Positions 50,127 through 55,088 of a stretch of 64,000 nt of DNA are shown piece by piece (within the stretch, counting starts at the first letter, position 1; each line of letters opens with the position of its first letter). The notes below the pieces were generated by a model. The model ran no database searches. It was not told the origin of the DNA and saw nothing but the letters and a program-made list of their open reading frames with translations. This stretch comes from Epithemia pelagica (lineage: Eukaryota > Protista > Bacillariophyta). Made by a program: the position numbers and the translations under genes. The stretch is taken from positions 1,302,001 through 1,366,000 of the forward strand of contig OX337240.1 in NCBI GenBank assembly GCA_946965045.2, in the 5' to 3' direction.

Positions 50127-51347
50127 ATGACAACGCCAACACTACAGTTTACGCTCCAGAGCACATTCAATGAAGAAGAGAAGCATGCATTTCAGTTTCG
50201 ACCGGACGCCAAGAAGAAATCCGTCTTTTGGCTTGGAGGGGACCATGACGCGACGACCATTGACTCGTCCAATGAGGCTTCCTGCAGCGCAAAAAGAATG
50301 GAAATAAACATAAACTCCCCATCGCAGGCCATCATCTCATTGAAGGCTTCTTCCTCTGATAACCCACTCCCATGGGCTGTGGGTGGCTTTCAACTTGTAA
50401 GCAATGCACGCCAAGCCCACGTCTACATAACGGCAGCCCCGACAAATGCAACGTCGTCGCAGACCGAGAAGGAAGCATTTATTATGACAGTAAAGGGTCT
50501 TCCTGTGTCTCCAGAATCGGAGAGTTCGGATGACCAAAAATGGTATAAAGCTCTTTGCGCGGTTCCTGGAGGACCACGGCCTGCCGTGTCCGTCCGACTG
50601 GTCTTTGACAAGCTCTGCAATGAAGACGACAGCAACCCTCAATTTAAACTCAAATGGATGAAACTAACAGCGCGTGTTGCTTCGACAACCGATACGGGAC
50701 ATCACGGCCAACAGCCTCCTAGCCGAGGGATGCAGTCCTCCCTTTCGTTCGTCGCAGGTGGTCCACCTACTGGAGTTGGTACTATGGGAAAACAACATCA
50801 TGAGCATCGTATAGCAATGCCCCAGATTCCTGGACTGTTTGGAGGGACCGCTGGGATGAATGCTGGTCTTGCTGCAGCTTCTCCGGCTACTTTTGCCTCG
50901 TCTCCCCAGCAAGCCGAACCACTGGCAACGGCAAGCGACGTGGGCGCCGCAATGGCAGGTCTTCACTTCTCATTGAGATCAACCGAGGAGCGTATCTTGA
51001 AACAAATAGAAGCTTCTCAGGATCAATTTCAGAAGCTCCTTGTCCAGCAACAACAAAACTACTTGGCAAGTTTACAAAGGACTATTGAACAGCACCAACA
51101 GTGGATCGAACAAAAACTTGAAAATCAGCGAAACGAATTGATCGACGCATTTAGACGTGAAACTGGTACAAATGCGACGCCACACAGTCCATCCAATACA
51201 CATGCACCGTATGATACAGGACACGAATACGGCAAATCAACAGCAAAGGATGAGGAAGGAGCATCAAATGAGTCTTTGTGGCTCCAGTATGCTAAAATGG
51301 ACTTGAACAGAAACTGCTTCGACCCAGATGGCGCAAAGAGGAGCTGA
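50127..51347 (+). CDS. Hypothetical protein: N-terminal beta-rich domain (weak resemblance to PAAT/C10orf88) and Gln-rich coiled coil
   Basis: 406-aa ATG ORF. GFQLVSNARQAHVY is only reminiscent of the PAAT motif; family unverified. Confidence 0.65.
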   Translation: MTTPTLQFTLQSTFNEEEKHAFQFRPDAKKKSVFWLGGDHDATTIDSSNEASCSAKRMEININSPSQAIISLKASSSDNPLPWAVGGFQLVSNARQAHVYITAAPTNATSSQTEKEAFIMTVKGLPVSPESESSDDQKWYKALCAVPGGPRPAVSVRLVFDKLCNEDDSNPQFKLKWMKLTARVASTTDTGHHGQQPPSRGMQSSLSFVAGGPPTGVGTMGKQHHEHRIAMPQIPGLFGGTAGMNAGLAAASPATFASSPQQAEPLATASDVGAAMAGLHFSLRSTEERILKQIEASQDQFQKLLVQQQQNYLASLQRTIEQHQQWIEQKLENQRNELIDAFRRETGTNATPHSPSNTHAPYDTGHEYGKSTAKDEEGASNESLWLQYAKMDLNRNCFDPDGAKRS

Positions 51348-51689: not shown

Positions 51690-54262
51690 TCAAAAGTCGT
51701 CAAGATGGACACGAACCAACCCTTTGCTCGAATCGAGTTTCACACCTACAAATGACGCACTCGGCTGGGCGGCAAAGCTGTTAGAGGACGATTTCGTCCC
51801 CTTTTTGATAGTTGATTTCTTCTTCCGACTCTTTGCAAAGGCCGTGGCAGATTTCAGGGCGCATTCATCAGACTCAATTTCAATTTGCCCGTCTCCATCG
51901 AGACATTTTCGAGTTGATACAGTGCCTTCTGTACATTCCTCCATCGAATGCAAGAATTCGACACAAATACGACGGCGTTTGCGCCATTCAGCAGCCATGT
52001 GGTCGATGCGTCGTTTTAGTTGATGCTTCGTGTGCTCATTCACTTTGAGTTGGCGCGCGTTTTCGACTTCTTCTCGAAGAGATTCAAGCAGGGCCTCGTC
52101 CTTTACAAGCTTAGTAGTGGCCTCTTCGTTGGTTGGCTCGGAAAGAAGTTTGGCAGTGGTGGCTTTTGCAGTCTGAATTGAAGTTTTCAAGAGGTCGAGA
52201 CGTTCTTTGGCTTGTGCTAAATCAGAGTAGAGCTTGCACTTCTCCTCTCCCTCAAGGCCGTTTCCATTGTTCGGCATCTGTTTGTAGTCGACGTAGTAGA
52301 GGGTGGTGTTGGAAGTCTTACCCCCTTTGAAGGAAAGTGAGCCGGAATACGGAGTGGATGATTTTGGAGATGATGCTTCCGAGTCTTGCTGCTCCTCGTC
52401 GTCACTATCAACGAAGCCAGATGAATGTACACTATCCAATGCCATATCGTCAAGGCAGGCTTTCAGAACTGGTGACGGAACGACTGCTTTGAGATCCTTC
52501 ATTATCTGGTTAGACGGTGGAAATAGCATCGCTGTCACCGCAACTCAGAAACTTACCTTGTGAACTTGTGTGATATTCATCGGACGAAATGCATCATGCA
52601 GCAGTTCAAAGATAAGTTTCTTTGCATCAGGCTTGCTCACGATTATCCGCGCATCTTTTCCTCCCATCGCTTCTGCTTGTTCTTGCCACTTCTTGTGGAT
52701 AGCCAAGGCTTCTTTTGATGGTTTTGGAGCGACCCTGTTCTTGGGCTTTGGTTCCATAGGAGTGACGTCGTTTGCATTCGAGCTTGGGCGAACATTTGAC
52801 CCTGATGAGCCTGACTGTGGAACAGGAGTCACAGTGTGAGAAGTTTTCGGATGTGGAATAGGACTATTTGCTGAAGTTTGTGGTGGAAAGGTCGGCATTG
52901 CAACTTTCTTGCGTTTCGAACACTTAGCACGCATCAAGGTCATATGTTCTTCGCTCATGAAGGAAAGAGGAAGCTCCGCCAGGTCGGGCCAACCGCCAAA
53001 GTCATCCTCCTGGCAAAAAAGGTTCAGAACGGAAATGGCACAGAAACGATTTTGTAGCGCTCGACTTACCTGGCAGTCCAAGCATGAGTACCATTTTTCG
53101 GTTGGGGCCAGATTTGACACATAGATCATGGCTGCTACATTGCGACACGACTCTCCTGAACAAACAATGGGGCACTCTTTCAGATCCTGGATCGACATTA
53201 TTTTCTTCACTTCCCATTCTTCTTCGTCGTCATCCTCCGCCTCGTCTTGCCGTGAACCGTCTTCATTACATTTGCTGCCAGAGCACTCCTCGTCATTACT
53301 GGTTGTCGAAGGAAGATCACCATCAGCTACCTCTCGTACCCTATTTTCGCTCTCCTCATCATCGGCGTCGTTCGCTTTGGTATCGGGTCCTCCGTTGTCT
53401 GGCGAACATGGAACTTCGTGGCAGTCTTTCCCATCCTGATCATCGAGCATACGTGACTTCGCTTCACCAGGGTCAACTACGTTCCTTTTATGGTCATCTT
53501 CGATGGTTTTATTCCGTGACACGTTTTCTTGATCTCCATCCATGGAGGAGTTTTGACGAACGCGGTCACTCATTGAAGCATCTTCCGGGATTACCATGGT
53601 GTTACTCGCTTCTCCTATGCTATTGGACTCAGTATTTTCATCTGCCTGATCTCCCTTCTGCTCGCTTTCTTCGAGAGAGGAAGTCTCGTGGGCCAAATCT
53701 TCCTTGGTGTTCTGGCTTATATTCATTCGTTCAGATTCTTCACTGGAAGACGGGTTGGAATTATTGGCATCATCTCGTCGCGAGTCATTCATAGACGGAT
53801 CATTTGCAGGAGTTCCTCTTTTCCCTTCGTCATTGTCAACATCTTCAAGTTGCTCGTCGTTCGATTCGCACCCTTTCATCTTTTTTGAAGGCTGTGTGAC
53901 ATGACCCTCCATTTCGGCTTCATCTTCCATGTCTTGTGGCTGCTCGTTCTCATGGCTTTTTCGCTTGGAGGACAGTGGCGTGCTCTTGGGAATCTTTTCA
54001 TCGTCTGAGTCTGACTTGTCCTCAGTTTCTGTGTTACTGGAGGTCGGTATTGATCCGTCTTGCCCTTCATTCTCATCACATTCTAAACTAGTGACAGGTT
54101 CAGGTTCAAGTTCTGGATCCTTGGATTCCTTTTTCGAATCCTGTCGATCAGCATTTCCCCCTGTAAGTCCATCATAATTCCTGTTGCCTGGGCATGCTTT
54201 GTTGTACTTACGATTTGGGTTTTGCTGGCGGTCTTGGACCTACGTGCACGTGTTGCCGCCAT
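51690..54262 (-). CDS. HOP2: HOP2 (PSMC3IP/TBPIP)-domain protein with ~500-aa N-terminal extension
   Basis: complement join(51690..52496,52557..53009,53070..54140,54212..54262), all phase 0, 793 aa. Winged helix AKKLIFELLHDAFRPMNITQVH, TLYYVD, LLSEPTNEE, EWRKRRRI, IEIESDE. Confidence 0.8.
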
Positions 54263-55088
54263 GTTCGCTTCCTTTGTCTTTGTCCCCTTTCCAGTCTGGA
54301 ATGAGAAAAGAAAGTTATGGTTTATGATTACGAGTACATTTTGCCTCCCTACGAATTCAAATATGAAATGTGACGATCCCGCGCGCGCTCCTGTCCCAGA
54401 ATCAGCTCTCATGTACGAGTAGTCCCGCAGATCAAAAAGATCCGTTAAGATCTGTTTTATCTCCAGGTCGTCGTACCATTGACGGTCTGCAAGGCGATGC
54501 AAATATCCGTACAACAGGATATCTCTTCATCGTTCAACTTTATCTGGATATTCCCCCCCGCAGATATTACAACTTGATCGACAGAGATGTAGGTCTGTTG
54601 GGAACAGCCACTCGGAATTACTGTTTAACACATCTCGATTTCACCAGGCGAACGAGACCACTACGAATACCCTCACTTGAAGAGTCAAGTGAAATGCTCT
54701 CTAGTTGTGAACTGGAGTTCTTTGCTAAGATCAATAGCGATCATTAAGACATCGAGCGGAACAACCTTGATAACATAAAGACTGAGCATCAATCTTCCCC
54801 TCGCCGACCCCATTTCCTACTGTTATCAAACTTTATTTGATGCAAACCAAGACCATCTCTTGAATTAGGTTTACCTTACTGTGCTCTATTGCAACGAAGG
54901 CCTCTTTATCGTCTCTCAATGGAAGTTTGGGGCGGGACTACAGTGCGGCGAAGCGAAGGATGATAAGAACAGTCGCATTTGGGTCACATCGCAACAACAA
55001 AACAATGTTGCCGCGCTCCGCCGCATTTGGATTTTTGATGTTGCTTTCTGAAACCTGAACTCAACTTGTGTGCATTGAAAATCAAGCC

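Follow-up and report, generated by a model that had tools for sequence, protein, structure and literature searches.

The window analyzed here is a 64,000-nucleotide (nt) stretch of the genome of the diatom Epithemia pelagica (contig OX337240.1, positions 1,302,001 to 1,366,000), and between its positions 54262 and 51690, on the minus strand, lies a gene of four exons with a predicted product of about 793 amino acids (aa), in which a long N-terminal extension carrying a cysteine-rich module precedes a C-terminal part that resembles the meiotic recombination protein HOP2. We interpret this gene as an ortholog of the published SIG7/M3 family, which would itself be the diatom HOP2, and we give this reading a probability of roughly 0.78. 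Three minus-strand open reading frames (ORFs) are present at the locus, at 51690-52538 (282 aa), 52545-53930 (461 aa) and 54083-54514 (143 aa), and none of them corresponds to the whole gene. Joining 54262-54212, 54140-53070, 53009-52557 and 52496-51693 yields 2379 nt encoding 793 aa without a stop, and all three introns (71, 60 and 60 nt) have a GTAAGT donor and an AG acceptor and lie in phase 0. The parts of the gene model, in the order of transcription, are as follows.

54212-54262, minus strand: exon 1, with its ATG at 54262-54260, encoding 17 aa (MAATRARRSKTASKTQI); the least certain exon.
54141-54211, minus strand: intron 1, 71 nt, GTAAGT..ACAG, phase 0.
53070-54140, minus strand: exon 2, encoding 357 aa; an acidic, serine-rich and probably disordered region, then the first half of the Cys-rich module.
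53010-53069, minus strand: intron 2, 60 nt, GTAAGT..CCAG, in frame and stop-free.
52557-53009, minus strand: exon 3, encoding 151 aa; the second half of the Cys-rich module, a Pro/Ser-rich linker, a conserved helix (PSKEALAIHKKWQ..GGKDARI) and helices 1 and 2 of the winged helix (the last two from alignments A1 and A2).
52497-52556, minus strand: intron 3, 60 nt, GTAAGT..GAAG, containing a TGA.
51690-52496, minus strand: exon 4, encoding 268 aa and the stop codon TGA at 51692-51690; the remainder of the winged helix with an acidic insertion, then the coiled coil, the WRKRRR motif, a capping region and a C-terminal beta-hairpin.

The 461-aa ORF runs through intron 2 because that intron is in frame and lacks stops. 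Exon 2 begins with an open stretch of 210 bases (54140-53931) without an ATG; the first in-frame Met is at 53930, and the frame is closed upstream by a TAG at 54242-54240. The ATG-less stretch is therefore real; translation of exon 2 must begin in exon 1 or at 53930, and intron 1 is required because the sole upstream ATG must be connected to the ATG-less frame. The assignment of exon 1 is based on this ATG, the GTAAGT donor and a predicted basic N-terminus resembling those of orthologs (MARKSK..., MAKPNTKGRR...).

Support for the other junctions comes from related diatom proteins. Exons 3 and 4 are each collinear with Sro587_g171310 of Seminavis robusta (31% identity with an E-value of 4e-16, and 35% identity with an E-value of 5e-36, respectively). 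At the junction over intron 2 the orthologs read CLDCQ-xx-DFGGWP, into which the 20 residues that intron 2 would encode do not fit, and at that over intron 3 they read ...YK/DLKA.VPSP (the slash marking the junction), as does an MMETSP transcriptome peptide, P0225, beginning MSQIYKDLKATVPSP. An alternative in-phase acceptor for intron 3 is present at 52506/52505 (with the exon starting at 52505), which would give an intron of 51 nt, three additional residues and a protein of 796 aa; the acceptor at 52496 is favored because it matches the spacing in the orthologs, including the transcript-derived peptide P0225. Introns 2 and 3 are thus supported by collinear orthologs, one of them derived from a transcript, and the locus is confirmed as one real four-exon gene with a predicted protein of about 793 aa. 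An earlier note on this DNA had proposed that the three ORFs and the ATG-less stretch are spliced through GT-AG phase-0 introns into a single protein, and this is borne out, with a length of exactly 793 aa. We also note that the ortholog models P0015, P0024 and P0026, which derive from metagenome or genome contigs, retain an intron at the position of intron 3, so that some 30 spurious residues follow ...ITQIYK or ...ADIHK. An intron at this position inside the winged helix appears to be conserved across several diatoms, and to be often mis-annotated.

Four sequencing runs that contain the locus (X2-X5) provide genomic contigs in which the introns are present, and these are silent on splicing. 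In the X5 contig, from a 2024 sample of the same organism, the 134 bases at 54163-54296 are replaced by TA, with nine further differences over the stretch; the replacement takes away exon 1, ATG included, as well as the 5' part of intron 1. Either this is a structural allele or it points to a 5' end that varies from strain to strain, and judged from this contig the protein may tolerate loss of, or variation in, its first 87 residues.

The relatives of the gene are found in diatoms. With the 461-aa ORF as query we recovered 49 diatom proteins, all 'hypothetical' or unnamed, among them full-length models from Cyclotella cryptica (735 aa), Mayamaea pseudoterrestris (631 aa) and Cylindrotheca fusiformis (655 aa). 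In the profile and fold searches that follow, orthologs stood in for the spliced window protein. A profile of the C-terminal halves (A1) matches 531 of 1.84 billion representative proteins at E <= 0.001, among them P0098 (E of 4e-81) and P0087 (E of 3.4e-95), both over profile positions 2-332; cluster look-up identifies these as Seminavis robusta Sro587_g171310.1 (CAB9513363.1) and Pseudo-nitzschia multistriata VEU34315.1, respectively, and from the species and the family, rather than from an identifier, we infer that the latter is Pmu0010180. Canonical HOP2 is absent from the best 150 profile matches and the best 120 word-index matches, all of which are members of the diatom family.

This family has a published history. 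SIG7 was named by Ferrante et al. 2019 (PMC6678668) as a sex-induced gene of Skeletonema marinoi and P. multistriata (0010180.1), and Bilcke et al. 2020 (PMC8027222) reported that both mating types of S. robusta up-regulate its ortholog Sro587_g171310 and that the family carries InterPro Hop2 domains, giving IPR040461 for the S. marinoi ortholog. In 2025 the same gene appears under the name M3 and is described as 'a presumed distant homolog of HOP2' (PMC12618581), and a 2026 preprint uses the name 'Hop2 like' for SIG7/M3. Its members include Sro587_g171310, Pmu0010180, S. marinoi Sm_t00009448 and Cylindrotheca closterium Ccl_13049 (PLAZA family HOM02SEM008092), and sexual induction is reported in all four species; in this literature SIG7/M3 is already the likely HOP2, and confirmation is called for. 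By its predicted protein the window gene is the Epithemia pelagica ortholog of this family, a further example and not a discovery. The earlier note had presented it as a hidden, newly recognised gene, adding that annotated diatom orthologs of the same architecture would remove that novelty; such orthologs are already annotated and the family has been published (PMC6678668, PMC8027222, PMC12618581), so this part of the claim falls.

The features of the predicted protein that bear on its relationship to HOP2 are the following.

52893-53222, minus strand: Cys-rich module, residues 324-413, split by intron 2 (alignment A5).
52278-52628, minus strand: HOP2/TBPIP-type winged helix, residues 502-598, split by intron 3.
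51936-52259, minus strand: coiled-coil region, residues ~605-712, kinked at the conserved SEPTNEE (in the structure model described below, helices 137-173 and 177-242).
51969-51986, minus strand: WRKRRR motif, residues 696-701 (EWRKRRR at 51989-51969).
51693-51752, minus strand: conserved C-terminal extension FVGVKLDSxGxVxRV(H/Y) (alignments A1 and A2), predicted to form a beta-hairpin (model strands 312-317 and 323-327).

At the level of sequence, Pfam TBPIP/Hop2 (PF07106) matches 19 of 26 ortholog winged-helix segments (best E of 3.8e-6) with no rival winged-helix family, and 15 of 42 C-terminal halves, for which every other family accounts for at most two; against full-length orthologs the TBPIP matches are sub-threshold. 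The sequence signal of any single protein is weak, and it recurs throughout the family. Pfam Mnd1 (PF03962) matches none of the 26 segments and none of the 42 halves. The coiled-coil region contains the motif WRKR(K/R)R, in which the W, the first R and the fourth-position R are invariant or nearly so among 42 family members. The corresponding motif, which belongs to the last zipper of HOP2, is EWRKRKR in mouse Hop2 (PMC8528721) and QWRKRKRM...GIEYDED in Arabidopsis HOP2, where Arabidopsis MND1 has RWTDN (PMC9957857); the likeness in WRKRKR and in G-I-E-x-D-E-D was judged by eye against the Arabidopsis HOP2 sequence printed in the latter paper, not against human HOP2. HOP2 clusters also come out on top by language-model features (0.88), a result that we take as no more than a lead.

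The structural evidence comes from an AlphaFold2 model of the C. fusiformis ortholog (P0022, residues 325-655), built from 42 sequences with a mean predicted local distance difference test score (pLDDT) of 84.8. It contains, in order, an extra N-terminal helix; a winged helix of three helices and two strands with a disordered insertion; two long helices parted at the conserved SEPTNEE; short capping helices; and a terminal beta-hairpin. The insertion is acidic, about 30 aa long and of low pLDDT, and lies between helix 3 and the wing; the hairpin is modeled at a pLDDT of ~88. When the model is compared with the Swiss-Prot portion of AFDB by Foldseek, ranks 1-8 are all HOP2 (rat, Schizosaccharomyces pombe, mouse, human, Xenopus, Arabidopsis, budding yeast and Dictyostelium; E-values of 8.5e-5 to 1e-3, probability 1.00), and the alignments span nearly the whole of HOP2, reaching its residues 189-226 and ending at or before query residue 294, short of the hairpin. 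The first non-HOP2 match has an E-value of 0.13, and MND1 appears at ranks 21, 22 and 27 (E-values of 0.31-0.39). The best PDB match is chain 4y66_F of the Giardia Hop2-Mnd1 complex (Foldseek E of 0.021, VIA Z of 10.7), and the winged helix superimposes on that of mouse Hop2 (2mh2) with a root mean square deviation (rmsd) of 1.2 Å over 62 of 64 residues (VIA-align Z of 10.4). As modeled, the C-terminal ~300 aa thus display the HOP2 layout of winged helix, leucine-zipper coiled coil, WRKR(K/R)R and helical cap. Identity as MND1 is rejected on Foldseek E-values of 0.31 or above, the lack of any match to Pfam Mnd1 and the presence of WRKRRR instead of RWTDN. The earlier note had read the C-terminal part as HOP2-like and not MND1-like, had taken the WRKR motif as favoring HOP2, and had proposed the comparison of Pfam TBPIP/Hop2 with Mnd1; the likeness extends over ~300 aa by Pfam and by Foldseek ranks 1-8, the motif agrees with published HOP2 sequences (PMC8528721, PMC9957857), and the Pfam comparison, made on orthologs, separates the two families at 19 against 0 of 26 winged-helix segments. 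That SIG7/M3 is the HOP2 ortholog of diatoms appears very probable to us, slightly more so than the full reading of the window gene.

Several observations weigh against this identification. The structure model is that of an ortholog and not of the window protein, whose separate exon translations give no match in Pfam or in PDB by phmmer; its winged helix is split by intron 3. Family profiles of the whole C-terminal half, the last zipper or the winged helix retrieve no Hop2 chain from the PDB sequences, and Pfam LZ3wCH (PF18517) matches 0 of 42 members. In VIA-align, generic winged helices reach a Z of 10.2 as compared with 10.4 for that of Hop2, and the winged helix alone cannot discriminate because unrelated ones score almost equally. 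Template modeling scores to HOP2 models are low (0.21-0.42), a result expected from the long flexible helices of the model and not decisive.

The N-terminal extension is organized differently. Residues 1-323 are poorly conserved, with Asp, Glu and Ser accounting for ~40% (composition counted over the first 300 residues). The Cys-rich module that follows has four invariant cysteines (C-x4-C ... C-x2-C), an invariant Trp and the motif Q-x2-DF-x-G-W-P, and an AlphaFold2 model of the module from an ortholog has a pLDDT of 94.2 and a predicted template modeling score (pTM) of 0.85. The window protein carries a single copy, with no second one elsewhere in the window, and many orthologs have two (for example P0022:30-116 and P0022:182-268), of two subtypes. 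The N-terminal subtype reads E.WD..RV...C.CRT..C...AV..WA.NL.P.D.W..CE.CQ..DFGGWPEG and has no following helix bearing His and Cys; the second reads ..IKCS.E.C.LPAC..W.SNL.P..KWYSCLDCQ..DFGGWP..ELP....H.....KCS, includes that helix, and is the only subtype in the window protein. Searches of Pfam, of PDB sequences, of PDB by Foldseek and of the ESM Atlas with the module give nothing significant, and in AFDB clusters it matches a single protein, the ortholog B8BX96 of Thalassiosira pseudonana (781 aa, labeled 'uncharacterized protein'). We found no description in the literature of a structured Cys4 module in this extension.

A Foldseek-independent scan of 48,161 PDB chains with the module returns zf-PARP domains in its top six positions (PARP-1 Zn1 and Zn2, and DNA ligase III-alpha), at Z-scores of 3.0-3.3 and an rmsd of ~4 Å over 72-76 aligned residues, which is below any significance level. 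By inspection, the module model appears to have the same order of secondary structure as zf-PARP (PF00645), and a W-Y ahead of the third metal ligand is presumably common to the module and the PARP-1 finger. Unlike zf-PARP, with ligands C-x2-C-x28-30-H-x2-C, the module has C-x4-C...C-x2-C, and PF00645 matches none of 35 modules. The resemblance is weak, a lead and not a finding, and we consider it unlikely that the Cys4 modules fused to the diatom HOP2 are very diverged PARP-type zinc fingers sensing DNA breaks or DNA structure. Were they such fingers, they would give the diatom HOP2-MND1 complex its own route to recombination intermediates, within a lineage from which DMC1 and the canonical synaptonemal-complex proteins have been lost.

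Beyond the 3' end of the HOP2-like gene, a 406-aa ORF on the plus strand (50127-51347) converges on it across a 342-bp gap; its predicted product has a Gln-rich, coiled-coil-like C-terminus.

Three other explanations have been weighed. The long protein could be an artefact of the gene model, with the Cys-module protein and the HOP2-like protein encoded by two genes, and gene callers do divide the locus into separate ORFs (P0001 and P0226 are cases in point). We regard this as extremely unlikely, given that the parts stand in the identical order in orthologs of 631-781 aa known from annotation or transcripts, and that exon 3 is a single uninterrupted frame in which the latter half of the Cys module is followed by the first half of the winged helix; on the latter ground two separate genes are rejected. 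The likeness to HOP2 could also be convergent or of another lineage, the family being a diatom-specific protein of winged helix and coiled coil or a diverged MND1 paralog. Both folds are common, PDB sequences give no match, and the single-sequence Pfam matches are modest (none shown above the 22.8-bit cut-off); yet TBPIP is the sole recurrent Pfam family and Mnd1 is never matched, the eight top fold matches are HOP2 without exception and come from four eukaryotic supergroup-level lineages, the E-value gap to the next match is 100-fold with MND1 about 1000-fold weaker, and the HOP2-specific WRKRKR is present rather than the RWTDN of MND1. We consider this origin quite improbable.

Somewhat less remote, and still unlikely, is descent from HOP2 with a changed role, in which the protein would act independently of MND1 as a transcriptional or chromatin regulator of the sexual stage through its winged helix and zinc module. 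Mammalian HOP2/TBPIP also co-regulates transcription factors, and the extension of ~500 aa with structured Cys4 modules is missing from the eight matched Swiss-Prot HOP2 proteins (214-243 aa). PF18517 goes undetected in all 42 members, mouse Hop2 binds CEBP-alpha (PMC8528721), the S. robusta ortholog is up-regulated by a sex-inducing pheromone (PMC8027222), and in S. marinoi SIG7 is induced during sex and MND1 is not (PMC6678668). Against this, the full HOP2 layout, including WRKRKR and the MND1-pairing coiled coil, is strongly conserved in centric and pennate diatoms, diatoms retain MND1 and have no alternative HOP2 candidate (PMC4647503), and the expression of M3 in gametangia is consistent with meiosis. 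We return to the reading of the window gene as an ortholog of a SIG7/M3 family that is probably the HOP2 of diatoms.

In other eukaryotes HOP2 pairs with MND1 through a parallel coiled coil (in part after PMC4647503). The winged helices of this heterodimer lie side by side and bind duplex DNA, its distal end touches the recombinase filament, and the complex stimulates DMC1 and also RAD51. By analogy, the C-terminal half of the diatom protein would pair with diatom MND1, which is described in the literature and has no gene in the window, in a heterodimer of the same kind, bind duplex DNA through the paired winged helices and stimulate strand invasion by RAD51, which is the recombinase proposed because diatoms are without DMC1. 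To this the diatom lineage would have added the disordered acidic N-terminus, the Cys4 module (presumably zinc-binding), the extra helix, the acidic loop in the wing and the C-terminal beta-hairpin, of which the zinc module may provide an additional contact with DNA, chromatin or a partner.

Patil et al. 2015 surveyed five diatom genomes and one transcriptome and found MND1 without HOP2 or DMC1, reported MND1 as up-regulated in meiosis, and suggested that diatom Hop2 may be too diverged for detection (PMC4647503); the statement on such surveys in the earlier note is correct. With HOP2 listed as missing and MND1 kept, one has to ask how MND1 functions and by what means RAD51 manages meiotic strand invasion on its own. 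What is new here is the fold-level evidence for HOP2 and not MND1, together with the mapping of the zinc module, the wing insertion and the C-terminal hairpin; neither this fold-level support nor an anatomy of the diatom-specific additions was found described in the literature. For this genome the gain is a corrected single gene model that replaces separately called ORFs, and the gene offers a marker of sexual reproduction in environmental data.

Among known systems the closest is SIG7/M3 itself. Collinearity between the window gene and Sro587_g171310 runs from the Cys module through the winged helix, the coiled coil and the WRKRKR motif to the C-terminal hairpin, and the window gene shares the order of parts and a similar overall length with the annotated orthologs (631-781 aa); unlike the many orthologs with two Cys modules, its protein has one, and a longer acidic N-terminus. 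MND1 (PF03962) resembles the family in having a winged helix followed by three leucine zippers, and gives weak fold matches; it differs in its RWTDN where the diatom family has WRKRKR, and diatoms already possess a canonical MND1 beside SIG7/M3 (PMC4647503). With canonical HOP2 (TBPIP, PSMC3IP; PF07106 and PF18517) the predicted window protein shares the TBPIP-type winged helix, the long coiled coil, the helical cap and the WRKRKR motif, followed ~25-28 residues on by an acidic I-E-x-(E/D)-x-D-E motif. Its 793 aa contrast with the 214-243 aa of the Swiss-Prot matches, a size that is typical of HOP2 and not defining for it, and the recombinase expected of canonical HOP2, DMC1, is absent from diatoms (PMC4647503). 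Relative to canonical HOP2 it adds an N-terminal extension of ~470-500 aa with the Cys4 module, an extra helix before the winged helix, an acidic wing insertion of ~30 aa and a C-terminal beta-hairpin.

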